From assembly GCF_032191835.1 (NCBI RefSeq), contig NC_083227.1:30690001-30754000 (forward strand): a DNA stretch of 64,000 nt. Direction: 5' to 3'. The position numbers and the translations under genes were made by a program. Source of the DNA: Heteronotia binoei (taxonomy: Eukaryota). Position 1 is the stretch's first letter. Each line of letters starts with the position of its first letter. This document shows, piece after piece, positions 30,689 to 57,770 of the stretch. The notes under the pieces are model-generated. The model was not told the origin of the DNA. It was given only the letters and a program-made list of their open reading frames with translations, and did no database searches.

Positions 30689-33600
30689 TCATAGAATCAT
30701 AGAGTTGGAAGGGACCTCTAGGATCATCTAGTCCAACCCCCTGCACAATGCAGGAAACTCACAAACACCTTCCCCCAAATTCACAGGATCTTCATTGCTG
30801 TCAGATGGCCATCTAGCCTCTGTTTAAAAACCTCCAAGGAAGGAGAGCCCACCACCTCCTGAGGAAGCCTGTTCCACTGAGGAATTGCTCTAACGGTCAG
30901 GCAGTTCTTCCTAATGTTGAGCCGGAAACTCTTTTGATTTAATTTCAACCCATTGGTTCTGGTCCTGCCTTCCGGGGCCACAGAAAACAATTCCACACCA
31001 TTCTCTATATGACAGCCCTTCAAGTACTTGAAGATGATGATCATATCACCTCTCAGCCGCCTCCTCTCCAGGCTAAACATCCCCAGCTCCTTCAACCTTT
31101 CCTCATAGGACTTGGTCTCCAGACCCCTCACCATCTTCGTTGCCCTCCTCTGGACCCGTTCCAGCTTGTCTATATCCTTCTTAAAATGTGGTGCCCAAAA
31201 CTGAACACAGTACTCCAGGTGAGGTCTTACCAGAACAGAGTAAAGCAATACCATCACATCACGTGATCTGGACATGATACTTCTGTTGATACAGCCCAAA
31301 ATTGCATTTGCCTTTTTAGCCACCACATCACACTGTTGACTCATGTTCAGAGTATGATCCACTAAGACCCCTAGATCCTTTTCGCACATACTACTGCTAA
31401 GACAAGTCTCCCCCATTCTATAACCATGCATTGCATTTTTCCTACTGAAATGCAGAACCTTACATTTATCCCTGTTGAAATTCATGTTATTGGTTTTAGC
31501 CCAGTTTTCCAGCCTGTCAAGGTCATCCTGTATCCTGTTTCTGTCTTCTTCTGTGTATGCAACCCCTCCCAATTTAGTATCATCTGCAAATTTAATAAGC
31601 ATTCCCTCTATTCCTTCATCCAAATAATTGATAAAGATGTTGAACAAAACAGGTCCCAGGACAGATCCTTGAGGCACTCCACTTGTCACTCCTCTCCAAG
31701 AGGATGAGGAACCATTCACAAGCACTTTGGGTGCGATTTGTCAACCAGTTACAGATCCACCTAATGGTAACAGGATCCAAACCACATTTTACCAACTTGT
31801 CAACAAGGATAGTATGTGGAACCTTATCAAAAGCCTTACTGTAATCAAGATAAACAATGTCTACAGCATTCCCCCAATCCAGCAAGGTAGTCACTTTCTC
31901 AAAAAAAGAGATCAGGTTAGTCTGACATGCCTTGTTCTTGAGAAAACCATGCTGGCTCTTAGTAATCACATCTATTCTTTCTAAATGTTCCAGGACCAAC
32001 TGTTTGATTATTTGTTCTAAAACTTTTCCAGGTATAATCGTCAAGCTGATGGGTCGGTAGTTACCTGGATCCTCTGTTTTCCCCTTCTTGAAGATGGGGA
32101 CAACATTCGCCCAACTCCAATCTTTCGGCACCTCTCCTGTTCTCCAAGAATTTTCAAAAATAATAGCCAGAGGCTCAGAAATTACATCCGCAAGCTCTTT
32201 TAGAACCCTTGGATGCAATTCATCTGGCCCTGAGGACTTAGTTTCATTTAAAGAAACTATGTGTTTATGCACTACCCTTACGCTGATCCTTGGTTGGAAC
32301 TTCATACCTTCCTTATATGTTCTGTTTTTGCCATGTTGAGCACCGTTCCCCTCAGAAGAGAAGACTGAGGAAAAGTAGGAAATGAGCAGTTCCACCCTCT
32401 CTTCATTACCTGTTACAATTTCACTTTCTTGCCCTCGCAATGGGTTTACCATGTCCTTGCTCTTTTTCTTACACTGAACATAAGAAATGAACCATTTTTT
32501 TGTTGTTTTTAGCATCTTTGGCCAGCCTAAGCTCATAGCTTTAGCTTTCCTAACTTTTTCTCTACAAGCACTAGTGATTTTTTTATATTCATCCTTGGTT
32601 ATAAGGCCCTCCTTCCAATTCCTAAAGGAGTCTTTTTATTTCACAAGTCTTTAGAGAGCTGTTTATGAAGCCACTTTGGCTTCTTTAGGCTTTTTCCATT
32701 TTTTCTTCTCATAGGAATCATCTGTGATTGCACTTTCGGTATTTTGCTTTTAAGAAACTCCACCCCTCCTGAACCCCCTTCCTCCTAAGTATTTCTGACC
32801 ACGGGATTTTACCCAGCATAGTTCTAAGTTTATCAAAGTTTGCCTTTCTGAAGTCCAACCTATAAGTCTGACTACATATAGCTTTCCCCTTCCCTAAGAC
32901 TAGGCTTGCCAATCCCCAGGTCCCAGCGGGGGTTCTTCCCACTTTCCCAAGCTCCTTCCCACCCCCAGTCAGCAGGTCAGTGGGGGGAAGCCCCACCCCC
33001 AGAGGACCATGTGCCTGTCCCCCTACGGAGGCTTCAGTCTCCAATTGAAAGGCTTCCTCTTGGGGTGGGGTGTCTGTGTTACTTTGAAGAAATTGGCAGC
33101 AACTCGTGAGTAGAGAGGCCAATCCCCAGAAACAGAGGGGTGGGGGATATGTCTGCTGGGCGCTTCATTATTCCCTGTGTGGAGATGGATTCTCATAGGG
33201 TATAATGGGGAATTGATCTGGAGGTTTCGGGGGCTCTGGGGGAGCTGTTTTTTGAGATAGAGGCACCAAATTTTCAGTATAGCATCTAGTGCCTCTCCCC
33301 AAAGTACCCCCCAAGTTTCAAAATGATTGGACCATGGGGTCCAATTCTATGAGCCCCAAAAGAAGGTGCCCCTATCCTTCATTATTTCCTATGGAAGGAA
33401 GACATTTAAAAAGGTGTGCGGTCCCTTTAAATGCTCTCTTGGAGTTCAATGATGCTTGTCACACCCTTGTTCCTGGCTCCTCTCCCAATGTTTCCTGGCT
33501 CCACCCCCAAAGTCTCCTGGCTCCACCCCCAAAGTCCCCAGATATTTCTTGAATTGGACTTGGCAACCCTACCTAAGACTGTAAATTCCAAAATCACATG

Positions 33601-34255
33601 GTCACTACTGCCCAGGGTGCCCACTATTTCCACTTCTTCAATCAATTCTTCCTTGTTGGTGAGAATCAAATTCAAGATAGCAGATCCCCTTGTTTCCTTC
33701 TTCACTTTCTGAAAAAGGAAGTTGTCAGCAAGACAAGTCAGGAATCTATTTGACTTTTCACTTTTAGCAGAGTTGGACTTCCAACAGATGTCCAGGTAAT
33801 TGAAATCTCCCTTGATCACTGTATCTCTTCTCTTGGAGAACTTTGCAATCTGCTGTAGAAGTATCTCATCCAAGTCCTCTGCCTGACTTAGTGGTCTATA
33901 GCAGACCCCCACAATAATATCACTGTTGTTTCTTACTCCTTTTATTTTTACCCAGAGACTCTCAACTGAGCTGCCATGCTCTGATTCACATATTTCCTCA
34001 CAAGTATATACCTCCTTCACATATGCTGCTACGCCTCCACCCTTTCTCATTTGCCTGTCCCTTTTAAATAAGTTGTACCCCTGAATCCTAATATTCCAGT
34101 TGTGAGTGTCATCCCACCATGTTTCTGTAAGGCCTATTATGTCATAGTCTCCTTCCTTTATTAGGACTTCCAGTTCCTCCTGTTTGTTTCCCATAATCTG
34201 TGCATTAGTGTAGAGACATTGGAATCCACGTTGTATGCATCCTGATGTTGTCACT
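30689..34255 (-). mobile_element. CR1 LINE, near-complete ORF2 (APE endonuclease and RT), frameshifted, interrupted by a MITE
   Basis: CLYTNAQ...GLTETWWDD...VGVCYRP...GDFNY (EN); LDYSKAFDKVPH, GVPQGSVLGPVLFNIFI, KFADDTKL (RT); (attctatg)n-type tail at ~30689-30706. Confidence 0.95.
32901..33571. mobile_element. hAT MITE (TAGGG family) nested in the CR1
   Basis: Ends taggcttgccaa / ttggcaacccta; perfect TSD cctaagac at 32893-32900 and 33572-33579. Confidence 0.92.
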
Positions 34256-34482
34256 GTGATTCTACAGTGTGAGCCCCCTTTTATCCGTAGCGTCCCTCTA
34301 ACCCTATCAGGGACATTTCACACTGGCATTGCTCTTTGGGGGTGGGGCTTCTCAAGCTAGCCAGCTGGCTGCCAGCAGGCAAAAACTTCCAAAATTGGGG
34401 GATCTCCTGCCATCTGGGAACCCTAGATCTGGACCAGATGACACGTCTGTTCTGTGGGGAATGCAGAACACTCTGGGATTCT

Positions 34483-43500: not shown

Positions 43501-46500
43501 CCGCTCCGCTGACGAGAGGGTCCGTGAGTAGTACGCGATAGGGACTTTGGTCCCATCAGGGAGTCGGTGGCCCAGAACTGCCCCCACGCCATAAGGGGAT
43601 GCGTCGCATGCAAGGGCCAAAGGCAGGGTCTCGTCGAAATGGGCAAGGACGGAGTTGGACATCAGGAGGCCCTTGATATCCTGGAAGGCTTTAGCGTGCT
43701 GGCGGCCCCACGCCCAGGGTCGGTTCTTGTCTAGAAGCCGGTGCAGGGGTTCGGCCACCGCTGCCTTGTGGGGGAGAAAAGCATGATAAAAGTTTAGGAG
43801 GCTGAGGAAGGCCTGGAGTTCTTGCTTGTTGGTGGGCGCTGGAGCATCTCTGATGGCACGCAGCTTGGCGTCGGAGGGGTGGACCCCCTGGGCATCGATG
43901 GGGAACCCCAGGAATTCCACCCGATCCACGCCCAGGAGGCACTTCTCCCATTTGACCTTGAGGCCGGCTGTTTCAAAACGTTGTAGGACTCCTCTAAGGC
44001 GGGCAGCGAATTCTTCAGGCGAGGCTGCCGCGATCAGCACATCATCGAAGAATGGAGTGACTCTGGGAAGTCCTTTTAAAAGGGAGTCCATTAGTTCCTG
44101 GAACAACCCCGGAGCCACACTCACGCCAAATTGCAACCGCTTTACTCTAAAGGCCCTCCGGTGGGTCACAATTGTTTGGGTGTTGGCCGTGGCCTCATCC
44201 ACCGGCAGCTGTTGGTAAGCTTGGGCCAAGTCCAACTTGCCAAAATTTTTTGCGCTGGCTAGGGTGGCTAGAACGTGGCTGACGATGGGCACAGGGTATG
44301 CGTGGGCCTGAAGAGCCTTGTTGAGGGTGCACTTATAGTCTGCACAAATCCGCACCTCCCCACTGGGCTTGACTGGAGTCACGATGGGAGTTTCCCAGGT
44401 TGTGTGGGTGACAGGCTCTAGTATTCCCTGTGCAATCAATTTATCCAGTTCCTCCTCAATTTTAGGCTTGAGCGCGAATGGAACTCGCCGCGCTTTAAGC
44501 CTAATGGGCCGCACTGTGAGGTCGAGGTGTAGTGTAATCGGGGGACCCGTGTAGCAGCCCAAGGTGCCATCGAAAACGGCCGGGAACTCTTCGCAAACCT
44601 TGTTAAAGTCCACTCCGACAGTCTTATTGACCCCCCTGATCTCTAGTCCGAGGGGCTTGAACCAGTCGAGACCCAAAAGGTTTGTAAGGTGGTTCTTGAC
44701 CACTAGCACTTGTAGCTGGCCCTTGAACCCCTTGTATTGGACTGGGACCGGGCCCACTCCCAAGATAGGCACCTTATTCTTCTGGAAGTCCAATAAGGTA
44801 AACCCTGGGTCCCTGAGACGAGGCCTCAGCCTGGTGGGAATTTTAAAAAATGTCTCTGCCGCTATAATAGATGATGCTGACCCAGAGTCCACCTCCATTT
44901 GGCAGGGCACCCCCCCGATCCCTACATTGATCCGGATTTTGGAGGGCCTGACTGGTGAGGGTAGGTACTGTACCAGGTATCGGTGGGCGTGGAGAGCGTC
45001 GATTTCGAAGTCTGGCTGGCCTTCGGAGTGTGCAGATCTTTGCGGGACGTGTGCTCGGGATTTGGATCTGCAAGCGCAGGCGATGTGGCCTTCCTTGTTG
45101 CAGAGTCAACAAGTGGCATTCCGGAATCGGCAGGTCTTCCGCTCGTGCTGGCCCCCGCAACTTGCACATGCAGGTGGTGTCTTGTGTCTCATGCCCTGTG
45201 GGACGTGGGTGGTCTTCCTTCCTGCTGAACGATAGCCGGTTTGTAGAGCTCTGTCCTCGTCCGAGTCCTCCGTAGATGGTTCAGGGTTGATCTGGTGTGC
45301 CTCAACCTGTCTTGTCGGCCGTGGCTCTGCTGATCTGCCCTTCTCCCAGCAGGTGGCCACGTCGATTGCCTTTGTTAGGTCGCACTCGGAGAAGGACAGG
45401 AGTATCTGCACTAGTTTTTCGTCCCTCAAGCCCCATACAAACTGGTCGAGAAGGGCTTCATTGAGGTCTGCGAAACTGCATCGGCTTGCCACCCGGCGCA
45501 GGCTTGTTAAGAACGCCATGGCGGTTTCGCCTGCCTTCTGTATCCTTTGTCGGAAGTCCCAGTGCCGGGTGAGCTTGGTTGGCTGGGGCTGGAAATACTT
45601 CTCCAGAGCGCTGATGATGTCGTCCACCGGTGTCTCTGAGAGCTTCCTGGGTTGGAGAAGAGCCCTGGCTAAGTCCACGGTCTCCGTGCCACACGTACTG
45701 ATAAGCAGAGCTCACTGCATGGTAGTCTCTGTAATCTTCCGGAAGGTCAGGTATGACTGGAAGCCTTCGACCCACGAGTCCCACAGCTCGGGGCGATCGA
45801 TGCTAAAGGGCTGTAGGAGGTTGGCTGGAGCCTCCATTCTTGGCAGCGCGTCTGGGCGGCTTGCGAGCGGGGGTGTGCGCAGAGCAGAGGTGCGGACCCA
45901 GATGGCTTGGATTTAGCCGCCTTTCCGTGTTCCTGGTTCTGTTGCTGGTTCTTACTGGAATCCCATCCTCGTCGCCAGTGTAAAGTACTGGGGTCGGCGC
46001 AGTAAGAGACCAGAGTCGGAGAGCGATTTCAGCAAGCTTTACTTCAGGAACACACACACACAGACTGAGCTCTGTTCAAACTTCCCACTCCTTTATACAA
46101 TTCTTGCCCCCTTCTGATTGGTCCTTAACTATCTACACGGATTGGCTATTTACAGGGCCCTAAGGGCCTATCAGGGTACAGTATGAGCCTGGATGTTGAT
46201 TGGCTGCTTATGTTTCAATCCTTCCCCTGATTGGGCACGCTTAGGCCTTCTCTGGAACCCTGGTGTGGAGTTCAAGTTCTGGCTTGTTCGGCTTCCCTCC
46301 AAAAGTAACAGTTCCCTCCAAAAGTAACAGTTCTCCCATTTGAGCCTAGGACATAACAGTCACACATCGAAGAATGTTTTTGTGTGGGAAGCCAGGTCAG
46401 TGTGAGCTTCCTCCTTTCTTACCTTGGCCTTGGAGTGGAGAAAGGACTTGGGGAAAAGCTGGAACTGAAGGTGAGAGGAGAGCAGCCTGGGTGGAGGATA

Positions 46501-49500
46501 TTTCAAGGCCGTCTCTTGGCCCATAGCAGTCTCTATCCAGGGGGTCCGCGTAAACATTGACACACTGCGTACCCACGTGGGGTCCCCATTCTTCTGGATC
46601 AAGCCCAAGATCTCCGACATCCAATGGGATCCTAAGAGAGAGTCCACCAGTTATGGGGTCACCTTGTAACAAGTTCAAGTTTAAGTTAGCCTTTATTGGC
46701 ATAAAATATATAGATGTATATATCAGAGCAAATTGGTTAAAAAAAAATGGAACGATCGCATACATATACATCAGGAAAAGCATAAACTTAAACTATTTTT
46801 ATGAGATCCTCTGGCGTGCCTTCAAAACAGAATAAAGAAATTTAGCCGCTTTCTCAGTGACACTAGATGAAGTATCGTTCAAAAGATTATAGACCTTAAG
46901 TGCATCAGAAGAATCAACCATGCTCACTAAAAGAGGATGTAAATACTTGTGATGAAGATCTGTATATAAATTACAATAAAGAAGAATATGAGTAACTGAC
47001 TGCACACATTTTTGCTTACAGAGACAGTATCTGACTGAGTAGGCTGTCTTGTTAAATCTGCCATAAAGAATGGCAGAGGGCATGGCGTTGCATCTGGCAA
47101 GAGATCTACGCTTCTGTGGCACCTGCAAGACGGATAGATATGAGGCCATTTTCCCAGTACTAAGAGAGATCTCAAAACTCAATGGGGAACAAGTTTTCTT
47201 AGGCAGACTGTATAGGTCTTGGTGCTCAGTATCTAGCAACCTGTTTTTAATTTGTTGGACTGCGGTGGTGAAGGACAGCATGGACAATAGTTCTAGGGAT
47301 AAACCCATCGCCATCCAAACCCTTCACCATTCAGGATATTAAGATCGTCTCCTGGAATGTGGCCGGCTGGCAGAATAAGGCTAAGGATGCTGAGTTTATA
47401 AGATATCTTAAGGGGTTTGATGTTATACTACTCCAAGAAACCTGGACTCCACACCAGATTCAACTTGAAGGGCACAAGTCCTATTCCCTCCCAGCCTTCA
47501 GGAGTAATACATAGGGTCATTTTCAAGCAGGCTTGTCTATACTTGTCTCCTCACATTTTGCCTTGGAACACATCACTCTACAGGCAAACATCTCTATGGT
47601 GTAGGTCGTCAAGCTTCTCCTCAAAAAATTCTCCTTAATTATTGTGAATGTATATGTACCACCCTCTCTAGATAAGCTAACTCTTTTGCAATATTGGGAA
47701 CACTTGGGCACACTCATGGAGGAATTAGAGAGGAAATTTCCAACTATAGAAATAATTCTAGTGGGCGACTTTAATACTAGGGTAGGGAAGGACTGTAGCA
47801 TATTTTTTAAAGCCCTTGATTTTAACCAAGACGACACCCTTCCACTCATTTTCTCCTATCCAAGATACTCCAAAGATAGCCTAAATTCAGCAGGCATCTG
47901 TCATACCAAATTCCGTATGCAATACAACAGAATTTGGTTAAATGGTTTGATTGCCTACCCAAATTCAGGAGAATTCACCTTTGTCTCCCTGAGGGGCTGT
48001 AGCGTAACTGATTACATTTTAATCTCTCCTTTATTGAAACCTTATGTCAAAGATTTTACATTGGGGGATTTTATTACCATTTTCCCCTCATTTTGACTCT
48101 TCAAATTGGTCCTCACATTTATCCCTCCTGTAACTTGTCCCTGCAACCTTACAAGACTGACTTATTGCCCAGAATTCCATGGAATGATCGCACAGTTTGG
48201 AAAACCCAACAGCTCTTCAGCTCTGCTGTATAATACAGATCCTCCTTAATATGTGCATCTGACCCTAATGTATCTATATCAACTTACAATTTTTTAACAT
48301 CTTATATCTCTGAATCACTGAGTGTCAGTTCAGGATGCCCAAGCAGAGGTGCAACTATTCTAGTAAATTCTACACACCGATGGTTCGACAGAGAATGTAA
48401 AGAAACAAAAACTCTTCTGCGTAAAGTTTACAACCAATACCGCAATTCAAAGGCCCTAACTGTGCCATCACAATACTTTGTGCTTAAGGCTCAGTTGCAC
48501 CACCTTATCACAAAAAAGAGGCACAATTATATTAAAACTCAATGGGAAGAGTTATACCATGCTACTACCTTAAACATTCTAATAAGTTCTGGGCCATAGA
48601 CTTGGATGCATTTCGGGCTGATGACCCATCTATGTCTGCCATTTCCTCTTATGTTTGGTTTCAGCACCTCTCAGTTCTGTTCCATCAAGATCTAACTTGT
48701 GCTGAACCATCTGAATTTCCTCTAGCCGATTTACCTGACTGGCCTCCTGTCCCTCCAGAGGAAATAAAAACATTAATTACACAACTGAAATTAGGAAAGG
48801 CTTCTGGCCTGGATGCCATTTCCTCCGAAATCTTAAAATTAGACCCAGATTGGTGGGCTTCTCCCCTTGCATCTCTGTTTACAATTGTAGATCGAACTGG
48901 CATAATTCCCTTGGCATGGTTGAATGCAATAGTGGTCCCGCACAAAAAAAGGTGATCACACTAACCCTGCCAATTACAGGCCAATTAGTCTACTCTCCAT
49001 CATTGGCAAGCTTTACTCCAAACATCTATTAGTCAAGCTCAGTCTCTGGATGTTGCAGGAAAAAATTCTAGGCCCTGAACAGTTGGGCTTCTGCAAAGGG
49101 AAGACCACTTTAGACCACTGCATTACCCTATCCCATCTAGTCAACAAGTACACTGTGCATAATAACCAGAAATTATTTGTTGCTTTTTTAGATTTAAAAG
49201 GCGCATTTGATTCAGTTGACAGGGATCTCCTCTGGATTAAGCTAGATAAACTAAACATGGATAAAAGACTCCTTATGCTTATTAAGAGATTACACACTTC
49301 TACCACCTGCCCGATCAAATGCTCATTAGCAGGCAACTTAACATCGAAGATTGCTGCCAAAAGGGTGTCAAACAGGGTGGCATTTTGGCTCCCTTTTTAT
49401 TCAATCTCTTCCTTAATGACCTGGCTATTCAGTTGTCTGGTCCTGACTGCCATAGTCCAAAATTTGGTGCATTACATGTACCCTTGTTACTTTATGCTGA

Positions 49501-52500
49501 TGATACGGTGCTGTTGTCCTGCTCTAGAGTAGTCTTAAGACGTCTGTTGTCCCGTTGTGTTCTGTATTTTACTAATAATAAGCTCCAGCTCAATTATGAG
49601 AAGTCCAAAATCTTAGTTCTCAAAAAAGTGGAGACTTTACAAATGGGTTACTGATGGTAAAGAGAAAGAGCAAGTCAAGTATTTTAAATACTTAGGTGTT
49701 TATTTTCAATATAATGTGACTTGGCCTACCCATCGCAAGTATGCAGCGAAGATAGCTAACATCAGTGCATCTGCCATAGCTCACTTTTTTTTATGGCAGA
49801 GGTAACCAATTTGTGCCAGCTGCCATAAAAATATTCAAAGCCAAAGTGATTTCACCTTGTAACAAGAGTTTCCTTCCCACACCCAATTAGATGATCTGAA
49901 CTAAATTTTAAAGGCTTTGCCTGTGTAAAACTGTTTAGGAGCACAGCCCTCCAGGATTTATCTATTGAAAGGAGATTATCAGCCTTTAATTCTGGTCATA
50001 TAAAAGAGTAAGGGGAGTAAGTAGGCTTCCCAAACCTCCCGCCCTGCTGGGGCCCCCCAGGTTTAGCCCCCTTCTCTCCCGCTTTCCAAAAATCTGAAGC
50101 GGGGTGGGGGGTATGGCGTCTGGGAGCGATTCCGTTGTGAGCGGTTGCTTAAGGTGGAGAGCTCAGTTCCTCTGCACGAGAAGAGCCAAGCTGAGTCCAG
50201 AAACACCTTAAGAGACCACCAAGATTTTTAGGGTTATAAACAGCTTTCAAGATTCAAAGCCCCCTTCGTCTGATCTTCTGAAGGGAACTTTGGTTGCAGT
50301 CACGCACACAAAGATAAAAGGGCCTCCTGGAGCGGGGCGGGGGGGGGGAGTGGTAAGTTAACTGTATACTGCCTAGCCCTTGTAGGATTGCCACCCCCCC
50401 CCCCCCCGGCTTTCTGGCTCCTCTTTCACTTCCCAATCCCGGCGTTTGAACCTGCTGGGATCAATTTGCAGCCGCTTTGCATTCCACAGACTTCCGTCAT
50501 CCCACTTCTTCATAATCTTCTTCTTTTTGCACATTTATTTGGAAACAAATCCCAGTGTTTCAGCTGAGTTTACTCCCTACTAGGCACAAGAAAGATTGCA
50601 GTGCCTCTGTTTCCTGCTGAAGAGAGTTGACCCAACCTTGTGCACACTGATTTGGGAGCACTCTTTGAAGTAGGCATGCTGAATTAAGGCTGCTGTTGTA
50701 AGCAGTGTTACTGGGTGAACTTGCCTTCTGAGCTTAGGGTTGCCAATCCCCAGGTAGGGACAGGGGATCCCCTGATTTGGAGGCCCTTCCCCGACTTCAG
50801 GGTCATCAGAAAGCAGAAGGGGGGGGGAAATGTCTGCTGGCCACTCCATTATTCCCTATGAAGATCGATTCCCATAGAATAATGGATAATTGATCTGTGG
50901 GTATCAGGGCTCTAGGGGGCTGTTTTTTGAGATAGAGGCACCAAATTTGTATCATAGCATCCAGTGCCTCTTCCCAAAATACCCTCCAAGTTTCAAAATG
51001 ATTGGACCAGGAGGTCCAATTCTATGACCCCAAAAGAAGGTGTCCCTATCTTTCATTATTTCCAAAGGAGGGAAGGCATTTAAAAGGTATGCAGTTCCTT
51101 TAAATATGATGGCAAGAACTTCCTTTGGAGTTCAAATATGCTTATCACGCCCTTGCTGCTGGATCCACCCCAATGTCTCCTGGCTTCATCCCCAAAGTCT
51201 CCTGGCTCCACCCCCAAAGTCCCCAGATATTTCTTGAATTGGACTTGGCAACCCTAGGAGTAAGTTAAGTTCAAACTTAAAAACAAATTGAGGTTGACTT
51301 CTCATTTTAAAAAATATTGTATGTTTTTGAGACAACTCTCAAAAAGTGCAGTTTCTCTCAACAATTGTTTTGCCTTTACCCCAGTGTTTAGCCTCTCTGT
51401 GTGTGCTCTAATTAGAGCTGCTAAGCTCCCACCAGGGCAGGGGATTCTCCACCCTGGAGGGCCCCAACGCGTTGGCAAGGAGCAGATCCCCGGGAGGATC
51501 CCCGCCCCCAAAGAGCCCCGTCAGTCCTAGAGTACCGTCCGGCACGATGATGTCACTTCTGGGTGATGTCACAGCAGCGGAGGGACTTGACAATCCTAGC
51601 TTTAATGTGATAAGTTTCCATTGCCATAGAGTGTAATAGATACCTGTAATACTTTTAAATTGCTAAACTCAACCTTTGAGTACCCACCATTCCTTGGAGG
51701 TCCTCCCATCCAAATACAAACCAGGGCCAACCCTGCATAGCTTGTGAGGTCTGACAAGATAGAGCTAGCCTGAGCTGTCTGGGTCAGAAAGATGAAAATA
51801 TTAAAAAAAAAAGGTTTAGTTGAAAAGTGCTTGAACTTGCAAACTCATCAAGAAAAGGTTAGTGACATCACAGCTACTGCCACAACCTCTTCTGCCTCCC
51901 CTCCCCACCCCATCCCGTTTGTTTTGCAATGCATGCCTTTCATCTACAGTGGAGCAAACTAAATATTTCTCTCCTCTCAGAAAATCATTAACAGGATCAC
52001 AAGAACGGGAGTGTTTTTTTCCCCAAAGAGCTGGCTACTCTGAACATTCTTCACTGGCAAAATTCCTCCTGACTTAAGCCCATTTCTCCAACCTTAGACC
52101 ACAAGGAGGAAGCCACAAAATGGATATTCTTTGCTGAGAAGCTGTTGTGGGTTTTGGCAAGGTGACCAAACACGATCTGTCAGGGCTCTCCAGAAACATC
52201 ACTCCAAGTGCTACGATGTAGAGATTTTTCTAGACAGATTCATGTGGGTCGTCATGTTTGTTTGAAGCAACAGGACAAAGTTTGAGTCCAGGGGCACCTT
52301 CAAGACCAACAATACTTCTGGATATAGACTTTTGTGATGAAGTGTGCATGCACACAAAAACAACTATTGATGTTGAAGGTACCCCTGGACTCAAACTTTG
52401 TTCCTTTTCTACACAAACTCTATTTACAGATAGTAACTTGTGTTCAGACAGCCAAGGAATGCCACACATACTCTTTTATTATTTACCTTGTTTTTTCCCC

Positions 52501-55342: not shown

Positions 55343-57770
55343 ATTTGTTGTTGTTCAGTAGCACAGTCGAGTCCAACTCTTTGCGATTCCATAGACAAAG
55401 TCACACCAGGCCCTCCTGTCTACCACCATCCTCCGAAGTCTGCTCAATTTCGTGTTTGTTACATCAGTAACGCTGTCCAGCCATCTCATCCTTTGCCGTC
55501 CCCTTCTTCTTTTGCCTTCTGTCTTTCCCAGCATCAGGATCTTCTCCAGTGAGTGCTCCCTTCTCATTTGGTATCTGAGCTTCAGCTTCAGTATCTGACT
55601 TTCCAGGGAACAGTCTGGGTTGATTTCCCTTAGGACTGACTGACTGGATCTTCTTGCAGTCCAAGGGACTCTCAAGATTCTTCTCCAGCACCACAGCTCA
55701 AAAGCATCTATTCTTCTGTGCTCGGCCTTCTTAATGGTCCAGCTCTCACTGCCATACATTACTACTGGGAATACCATCACTTTGACTATACGAACTGTTG
55801 TTGGCAGGCTGATGTCTCTACTTTTTATTATACTGCCCAGGTTCACCATAGCTGTCCTCCCAAGGAGCAAACGTCTTTTAATTTCATGGCTACAGTCACC
55901 ATCTGCAGTGATCCTGGATCCTAGAAATGTGAAGTCTGTCACTACTTCCATGACTTCCCCTTCTATTTGCCAAGGTGTGATGGGGCTGGATGCCATGATC
56001 TTAGTTTTTTTGATGTTGAGTTTCAAATCTACTTTTGTGCTCTCCTCTTTCACCCTCAACAAGAGGTTCTTTAGGTCCTCCTCACTTTCTGCTTTTAGAG
56101 TGGTGTCATCTGCATATCTGAGGTTGTTGATGTTTTTCCCGGCAATCTTAATTCCGGCTTGTGGTTCATCCAGGCCAGCATTCCGCATGATGTACTCTGC
56201 ACATAAATTAAATAAGCAGGGTGACAATATACATCCTTGCCGAAATTCTCTTCCTATTCTAAACCAATCAGTTGTTCCATATCCCGTTCTGACAGTTGCT
56301 TCTTGACCCTTATACAGGTTTCTCAGGAGACATGTGAGGTGGTCTAGTATTCCCATCTCTTTAAGGACTTGGCACAGTTTGTTGTGATCCACACAATCAA
56401 AGGCTTTAGCGTAGTCAATGAAACAGAAATAGATGTTTTTCTAATACTCTCATGCTTTCTCCATAATCCAGCAAATGTTGACAATTTGATCTCTAGTTCC
56501 TCTACTTCTCCAAAACCCAGCTTGAACTTCTGGTAGTTCCCAATCTACATACTGCTGAACCCTAGCTTGTAGGATCTTTAACATGACCTTGCTGGCATGT
56601 GAAATTAGTGCACTGGTGAGATAGTTTGAACATTCCTTGGCATTACCCTTCTTTGGGATTGGAATATAAACTGATCTTTTCCAATCCCATGGCCACTGTT
56701 GTGTTTTCCAGATTTGTTGACATAATGTGTGCATAACTTTAACAGCATCATCTTTTAGGACTTTGAAAAGTTCAATTGAGATACCATCATCTCCACTCGC
56801 TTTGTTGTTAGTAATGCTTTCTAAGGCCATTTGACTTCACACTCCAGAATGTCTGGCACGAGGTCAGCAATTTCACTGTCATGGTTGTCAAGTACATTGA
56901 GATCCTTCTTGTATAAATCTTCTGTGTATTCTTGCCACCTCTTCCTGATCTCTTCTGCTTCTGTTAGGTCCCTACCATTTTTGTCCTTTATCATGGCCAT
57001 CTTTGCATGATTTCTCCAATTTTCTTGAAGAGACCTCTTGTCCTTCCCGTTCGATTATTTTCCTCTATTGCTTTGCATTGTTCCTTCAGGAAGGCCTCCT
57101 TATGTCTCCTTGCTGTTCTCTGAAAATCTGCATTCAATTGAGTGAATCTTTCCTTTTCACCTTTGCCTTTCGCTTTCCTTCTTTCAGCTATTTGTAAAGC
57201 CTCATCAGACAGCCACTTTGCTTTCTTGCATTTTTTTCCCCTTTGGGATGGTGCTGGTTGCTGCCTTCTGTACAATGTCATGAACCTCTGTCCATAGTTC
57301 TTCAGGCACTCTATCAACTCTAATCCCTTAAATCTTCTTCACTTCCACTGTATATTCATAAGGGATCTGATCAAGGTCAAACCTGAATGGCCTAATGGCT
57401 TCCCCAGTTTTCTTCAATTTAAGCCTGAATTTTGCTGTGTGCAGCTCATGAGCTGAGGCACAGTCAGCTCCAGGTCTTGTTTTTGCTGACTGTAAGGAGC
57501 TTCTCCATCTTTGACTGCAAAGTATGTAATCAATCTGATTTCTGCGTTGCCCATCAGGTGATGTCCACGTGTAGAGTCATCTTTTAGGTTGTTGGAAGAG
57601 GGTGTTCGCTATGACCAGTTTATTCTCTTGACAAAACTCTTATTAGCCTTTGCCTGGCTTCATTTTGTTCTCCAAGGCCAAACTTGTCAATTGTTCTGGT
57701 TACCTTTTGACTTCGTACTTTGGCATTCCAGTCCCCTATGATGAGGAGGGCATCTTTTTTGGTGTTGTAG
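55343..57770 (-). mobile_element. BovB (RTE) LINE, 5'-truncated, disrupted
   Basis: 345-aa RT/C-terminal frame (RQGCILSPCLFNL, LRYADDTTL, RRIDAFELWCWRRIL), upstream pieces (KASGDDGI, LISHASKVMLKIL), (caa)n tail. Confidence 0.93.

Follow-up and report, generated by a model that had tools for sequence, protein, structure and literature searches.

A 5'-inverted LINE insertion in the gecko Heteronotia binoei suggests twin priming outside the L1 clade

Long interspersed nuclear elements (LINEs) with 5' inversions are usually treated as a peculiarity of L1, and largely of mammalian L1. Here we describe such an inversion in a 64-kb stretch of the genome of the gecko Heteronotia binoei (NC_083227.1, positions 30,690,001 to 30,754,000), referred to below as the window; it is free of Ns, and all positions given are counted within it. 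Between 46659 and 49866 the window contains a decayed LINE in two oppositely oriented arms. The endonuclease and reverse transcriptase (RT) lie on the plus strand, and the C-terminus of the same open reading frame (ORF), the 3' untranslated region (UTR) and the tail lie on the minus strand. This composite very probably goes back to a single retrotransposition of a squamate LINE that is not L1, that has an apurinic/apyrimidinic endonuclease (APE) and a short-repeat tail, that probably belongs to the L2 clade, and whose integration was resolved by twin priming.

Layout of the composite insertion

The window has exactly two copies of the 15-mer TCACCTTGTAACAAG, at 46659-46673 and 49852-49866, and the two are on the plus strand. 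Window shuffles give a chance expectation of 0.01 matches even with one mismatch allowed. A first reading of the letters (the original prediction) had seen in these copies an exact 15-bp target-site duplication (TSD) around both halves, and they do stand at the outer ends of the composite and nowhere else. From left to right, the order is TSD, tail, 3' arm on the minus strand (46674-47308), 5' arm on the plus strand (47309-49851) and TSD (Table 1). The TSD measures 15 bp, or 11-15 bp if homology to the tail is allowed for. The inner junction has no TSD-like copy, 47309-23 being unrelated sequence. Within the 64-kb window, no copy of the LINE family was found besides the composite at 46674-49851, and a search for a paralogous empty site or a paralogue of the flanks found none.

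Table 1. Features of the composite LINE insertion (window positions)
Feature	Position	Strand	Basis or remark
Left copy of the 15-bp TSD	46659..46673	+	Exact repeat; 3' end CAAG is the putative first-strand primer
Short-repeat 3' tail, sense TAACTTAAACTTGAA	46674..46688	-	Sequence; (ACTTG)n in other family copies
3' UTR with terminal motif ATGCCAATAAAGG containing AATAAA	46689..46798	-	Sequence; same motif at the 3' end of relative L003
Non-inverted arm: ORF2 C-terminal ~168 residues and stop	46799..47308	-	phmmer, alignment, family reads
Inversion junction: 3' ends of two cDNAs joined, ~0.29 kb of ORF2 absent	47308..47309	.	Loose ends of reads; X1 contig
Inverted arm, 2.54 kb: upstream stub, APE endonuclease (~47332-48080), linker, RT (~48945-49800)	47309..49851	+	Pfam, tblastn
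TCAC microhomology at the putative second-strand priming site	49852..49855	+	Shared by element interior and start of right TSD
Right copy of the 15-bp TSD	49852..49866	+	Exact repeat

Other copies of the family were compared through reads of three whole-genome runs from one sample of the same species and through one contig set, at 80% likeness. Further out, at 46300-46430 and 49968-50200, the flanks of the insertion enter other high-copy repeats, with a read depth of ~150-200 against ~5 in the unique flank. At position 46354 virtually all reads have C and the window has T.

The minus-strand arm carries an ORF of 171 codons (47314-46799). Downstream of it come a stop, CCAATAAAGG and a short tail resembling AACTT/ACTTG; the 3' UTR of ~110 nt ends in ...ATGCCAATAAAGGCTAACTTAAACTTGAA directly at the left repeat. 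A phmmer search of 1.8 billion representatives returned 191 proteins matching this ORF (best E 2e-29). In every long match, the ORF corresponds to the extreme C-terminus of an endonuclease-RT protein of ~1000-1100 residues. Near the C-terminus, a C-x-C-x9-H-x4-C motif is invariant across the family alignment. A Cys/His C-terminus, a stop, AATAAA and a repeat tail had been predicted on the minus strand, and all are there, but the tail unit had been read as (aactt)n. Family reads in all three runs continue before 46683 as ...CAAGTCAAGTCAAGTC in the consensus of their loose ends, which shows the family tail to be (ACTTG)n in the sense orientation.

The terminal motif ATGCCAATAAAGG also occurs in the relative L003 (5080-5105), whose ORF2 is just 34-60% identical by segment. 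Since the element and this relative share the motif, its AATAAA may be part of a conserved 3' recognition element and not, or not solely, a poly(A) signal. In the predicted fold of the 3' UTR, its start AGUUUAAGUUUAUG pairs with the tail-proximal UAACUUAAACU (z -3.1). A search of the 3' UTR with Rfam, aimed at the UnaL2 3' element and at LINE motifs in general, gave only noise (E about 5).

The plus-strand arm has the endonuclease and RT in the predicted orientation, with Pfam placing Exo_endo_phos at 47341-47514 and RVT_1 in ORFs at 49050-49654. It contains several frame breaks and stops. The tblastn frame changes near 48075, 48571, 48941-4, 49360, 49616 and 49785 coincide with length differences between the window and most family reads, and the copy at 46674-49851 is therefore decayed. 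The arm begins ~14-22 nt upstream of the putative ORF2 start, a position that in relatives is the spacer between ORF1 and ORF2. A contig of a second sample (X1) matches the stretch between 47387 and 47308 and continues beyond 47308, so that 47309-47331 is probably part of the element, upstream of the endonuclease, and not filler. The original prediction that the inverted arm stops almost exactly at the ORF2 start is thus correct as to position, though this is a single case.

One non-L1 family in both arms

With tblastn, full-length ORF2 proteins of lizards can be aligned to both arms in collinear order. Residues 4-849 of P0024 (1113 aa) fall at 47332-49854 on the plus strand and residues 991-1109 at 47155-46805 on the minus strand; the minus arm corresponds to residues ~940-1109 of this protein. 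Similarly, P0007 (993 aa) covers the plus arm with residues 2-723 and the minus arm with residues 811-982. The nearest relatives are the same for both arms, namely P0172, then P0003, then P0007. P0172 is 63-68% identical over the RT and 47% identical over the C-terminus. Along this protein, the plus arm extends to residue 387, and the minus arm sets in at residue 483-484. As predicted, coding sequence is missing between the halves: ~95 residues (~0.29 kb), those numbered 388-483 in P0172, are unrepresented.

Read depth leads to the same view. It is ~2-5 in the unique left flank, ~80 in the endonuclease, ~245 at the RT end and ~300 in the minus-strand arm. A depth that rises continuously from endonuclease through RT to 3' arm is the 5'-truncation gradient expected of a single multi-copy family, whose copies of at least 80% likeness number, by the reads, in the tens to hundreds. 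Collinear proteins, common nearest relatives and the depth gradient together assign the two halves to one family, as the original prediction required of a single event.

The reads also locate the breakpoints. Behind 47308, family reads continue as TGCTTTTATTTTTCTCTCAATTTGTGCTGA (81-190 reads per run, agreement 0.85-0.92). The sense translation of this continuation places ...SAQIERKIKA before MGLSLE, which matches the relatives. The loose ends of the reads and the one X1 contig put the inner breakpoint at 47308/47309 and not at the ~47335 first proposed. Behind 49855, family reads continue as AACTTCTGTATGGCATCCCAATCTGGATTG, with 94-160 reads in each run and an agreement of 0.94-0.96. Translated in the frame of ...AKVI, the continuation gives SQLLYGIPIWI, as in relatives at the same point. 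The arm end at 49851 is as predicted, with the refinement that canonical copies match on through 49855 and so share 4 nt with the TSD. At the end of the RT, family reads also fall into two groups, of which one departs from the window at 49845 and continues as ACGCTTGCCCAAATCCTCTATGG..., and the other departs at 49855. At least two subfamilies therefore coexist, and the window copy is in the larger one.

Two wall lizards, Podarcis muralis and P. lilfordi, are the sources of the named members of the relatives' clusters; more distant relatives come from a beetle and a psyllid. Their names are 'reverse transcriptase domain-containing', 'ribonuclease H' and 'uncharacterized', and a search of the ESM Atlas gave only 'hypothetical protein' clusters. 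No RNase H was found in the family. Two ORFs are present in the relatives, one of which, the L001 element, measures at least 5.4 kb. Their ORF1s (L001 32-1981, L003 161-1636) encode low-complexity proteins of 491-649 aa, separated from ORF2 by a spacer of 12-50 nt. The search with the L001 ORF1 gave no Pfam match at E <= 1. Neither this ORF1 nor that of L003 has a CCHC zinc knuckle, and the two do not align to each other. In L003, there is no ATG from the ORF1 stop to the conserved start of the endonuclease.

The clade was approached through an RT tree of 77 rows and 384 columns, computed under LG+C20 PMSF and LG+G4 with SH-aLRT as its support measure. Members of 90%-identity clusters (P0153-P0171 and P0240-P0304) were left out as redundant, and the window RT was entered read through, with X at each break. 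Under both models, it falls inside a 13-row clade of squamate (lizard) proteins with SH-aLRT 100, separate from a 16-row L1 group that also has SH-aLRT 100. It lies outside the CR1 anchors (a window copy and P0210/P0212) and the BovB anchors as well. The L1 anchors were checked against the solved human L1 ORF2p, which P0215 (Xenopus) matches at 8e-153 over residues 3-1242 and P0218 at 2e-84. P0024 matches human ORF2p over the RT core only (E 1.8e-25), and R2 proteins about equally well. The predicted non-L1 nature of the RT is therefore solid.

Several features of the family point away from L1, CR1, RTE/BovB and Vingi. L1 is contradicted by the position of the RT, by a tail that is (ACTTG)n-like and not poly(A) or A-rich, and by an ORF1 without Transposase_22 in a relative. 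CR1 is contradicted by the tree and by a tail that differs from ...ATTCTRTG repeats. RTE/BovB elements are compact and have a single ORF, unlike the two-ORF relatives of at least 5.4 kb, and the RT lies outside the BovB anchors. Vingi has been reported in reptiles, but Vingi-1_ACar is likewise described as a compact single-ORF element (PMC13708176) and differs in this from the present relatives with their two ORFs. Among the clades for which activity has been reported in a lizard (L1, L2, CR1, RTE and R4; PMC5389967), only L2 remains. The family is thus probably L2, by elimination only; Rex1, RTEX or another lineage is a possible alternative.

A short tandem-repeat tail in the reads and the size of L001 (at least 5.4 kb) fit squamate L2 elements (4.8-6.3 kb; PMC5389967), although neither is exclusive to L2, and such a tail fits stringent L2-type elements (PMC4176376). 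In the cTBR region, the family has (P/S/R)WFDxEC...Y(K/R)xYR; compared with the motif P-W-x15-E-x2-W (PMC4176376), PW and the aromatic residue are kept and the E at +17 is not.

Two other LINEs of the window served as anchors of the tree. A decayed CR1 LINE at 30690-34302 (minus strand) has the classic 3' ends ...CCAACTCTATGATTCTATGA / ...GGTCCCTTCCAACTCTATGATTCTATGA, and an RTE/BovB-type LINE at 55345-57760 (minus strand) ends in ...GAGTTGGACTCGACTGTGCTACTGAACAACAACAA / ...GCAAAGAGTTGGACTCGACTGTGCTACTGAACAACAACAA.

Probable twin priming and its alternatives

The sequences at the two outer ends bear on how the composite was formed. On the plus strand, the left repeat has the 3' end ...AACAAG, of which 4 nt are complementary to CUUG of the RNA tail; the repeat is followed by TTCAAG..., which is the tail's complement. 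This pairing and the sequence downstream of it indicate ordinary target-primed reverse transcription at the first strand. At the other end, a second nick 15 bp away would leave the minus-strand overhang 5'-CTTGTTACAAGGTGA-3'. Its last 4 bases pair with UCAC at 49852-55, and the minus strand after it, AATCACTTTGGC..., is the complement of RT-coding RNA. An overhang that pairs with UCAC and is continued by AATCACTTTGGC... points to the overhang as the primer of a second cDNA. The RNA-sense orientation of the plus arm fits a primer on the minus strand. A match of 4 nt or longer at exactly that position has a chance of ~0.4%.

The series of events may have been as follows. The element's endonuclease, probably acting in cis together with its RT, would have nicked the plus strand after ...AACAAG. 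This 3' end would then have paired with CUUG of the (ACUUG)n RNA tail and primed a first cDNA, now the plus strand of 46674-47308 (~635 nt). After the minus strand was cut 15 bp away, the freed 3' overhang (...AAGGTGA-3') could have annealed by its four terminal nt to UCAC in the RT-coding region of a LINE RNA. From there, it would have primed a second cDNA toward the RNA 5' end, now the minus strand of 49851-47309 (~2.54 kb), with synthesis stopping ~14-22 nt upstream of the ORF2 start. Joining of the cDNA 3' ends at 47308/47309 and fill-in would result in a 15-bp duplication around the composite, and would leave ~0.29 kb of RNA, located between the priming regions, without a copy. Both the geometry and the microhomologies at the ends fit the original prediction of one twin-priming-type event.

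Certain points weigh against this reading. No empty site and no read that skips the insert were seen, in runs of one species of which the deep ones come from one sample. Reads cannot be assigned to the locus across the three junctions, and the layout rests on the assembly. The copy has many private changes and at least six frame breaks, yet its TSD copies are identical at 15/15 positions, which is possible but somewhat lucky if the decay is wholly post-insertion. The LINE clade is assigned by exclusion only.

The same final layout could result from a later rearrangement. An ordinary 5'-truncated insertion on the minus strand would have been broken twice, and its 5' 2.5 kb rejoined backwards with a loss of 0.29 kb, by non-homologous end joining or by microhomology-mediated end joining via TCAC, for which these 4 nt are equally usable. 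One breakpoint would have to hit the boundary of element and TSD within 0-4 bp and leave the TSD intact outside the inversion. Over a 3-kb element this is a 1-in-several-hundred coincidence, whereas twin priming predicts the position for free, and we consider such a rearrangement improbable.

Mobilization in trans, with L1 machinery copying the RNA of this family, is improbable to a similar degree. The length of the TSD and the inversion are L1-like (PMC4245944), and L1 is present in squamates (PMC5389967). However, the insert lacks poly(A); its terminal sequence is the short-repeat tail of the family itself, which pairs with CAAG in the target, and a nick at AACAAG/AG does not resemble the L1 site TT/AAAA.

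An assembly artefact, in which copies of a multi-copy LINE were joined wrongly or an inversion between them was collapsed, is very unlikely. A mis-assembly would not duplicate a unique 15-bp flank exactly at both outer ends, nor yield priming-site microhomologies at both, and the reads show no strand-change joint or depth hole at the junctions. The tens to hundreds of family copies at 80% likeness or more would favor an artefact, as would the lack of locus-specific reads singled out across the junctions. Two independent insertions of the same family tail to head, with a 15-bp repeat that is due to chance or was there beforehand, account for the opposite orientations and nothing more, and are extremely unlikely: the plus arm lacks a 3' end, a product that target-primed reverse transcription cannot make, the minus arm lacks a TSD of its own at 47309, the exact 15-mer recurs only at the outer ends, and the flanks have no paralogue in the 64-kb window.

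Comparison with known systems

With twin priming as the preferred explanation, the gecko copy shows a process that depends neither on poly(A) priming nor on L1 proteins. The suggestion that twin priming extends to a clade beyond L1 is well supported for a non-L1 LINE with a short-repeat tail, on the strength of one decayed copy. The claim of novelty becomes less absolute, since a 5' inversion of Nimb-2_DR is already known from a cell assay (PMC4245944). In the accessible literature, we found no report of a genomic L2-type inversion; subscription papers lay outside this search, and an earlier description is possible. The copy is a single decayed example at present, and its interest would grow if inversions proved to be frequent in the family genome-wide. 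For the annotation of reptile genomes, it implies that opposed fragments of one LINE within one TSD represent a single event and not nested insertions.

In the assay of Yamaguchi et al., 5' inversions occurred only with human L1 in human cells and in one Nimb-2_DR insert in chicken DT40 cells (PMC4245944). Nimb-2_DR resembles the gecko element as an APE-type LINE outside L1 with a 5' inversion, and its TSDs of ~12 bp are also fairly long (PMC4245944). It differs in being an experimental insert of an I-group element with RNase H, whereas the gecko copy is a natural germline fossil of another clade without RNase H.

The stringent L2 elements ZfL2-1, ZfL2-2 and UnaL2 share with the gecko element an ORF2 with APE and RT and a short-repeat 3' tail used for priming (PMC4176376, PMC4245944). 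Their 3' UTR is recognized in cis, as is presumably that of the gecko element. ZfL2-1 has TSDs of ~5 bp and showed 0 inversions in more than 200 assayed inserts (PMC4245944). It has been proposed that second-strand priming requires a 3' overhang of ~10-20 nt, and short overhangs were held responsible for the absence of inversions in ZfL2-1 (PMC4245944). The gecko element, an L2 member by elimination only, differs from ZfL2-1 in a TSD of 15 bp (11-15) instead of ~5 bp, and the combination of a 15-bp TSD with an inversion in a non-L1 LINE agrees with the overhang-length proposal (PMC4245944). Twin priming might even be regular in this squamate lineage, with an endonuclease that cuts with a stagger of ~15 bp, unlike the ~5 bp of ZfL2-1, although this is a tentative and rather doubtful extension. 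If true, the family would be a natural test in which overhang length, and not L1-specific proteins, decides second-strand priming.

Twin priming itself was proposed for L1 by Ostertag and Kazazian in 2001, as cited in PMC12016303 and PMC4245944. In the human germline, ~18% of L1 insertions are inverted, with medians of 751 bp for the inverted and 571 bp for the direct cDNA (PMC12016303). The internal breakpoints of human L1 inversions are at most 20 bp apart in 46%, and the rest have larger gaps or overlaps (PMC12016303). L1 inversions are accompanied by TSDs of 10-20 bp and by gaps or overlaps between the cDNAs (PMC4245944, PMC12016303). The gecko insertion resembles mammalian L1 inversions in several respects. 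A single element, with its 5' segment inverted and its 3' segment direct, lies within one pair of TSDs; the point of internal priming is next to the 5' TSD, where there is terminal microhomology; the length of the TSD is within 10-20 bp; and a gap separates the two cDNAs. In contrast to L1, it has no poly(A), and its first strand was primed on a 5-nt repeat tail. Against the human germline, the direct cDNA of 635 bp is typical and the gap is ~0.29 kb, whereas the inverted arm of 2.54 kb is, as predicted, unusually long beside the human median.

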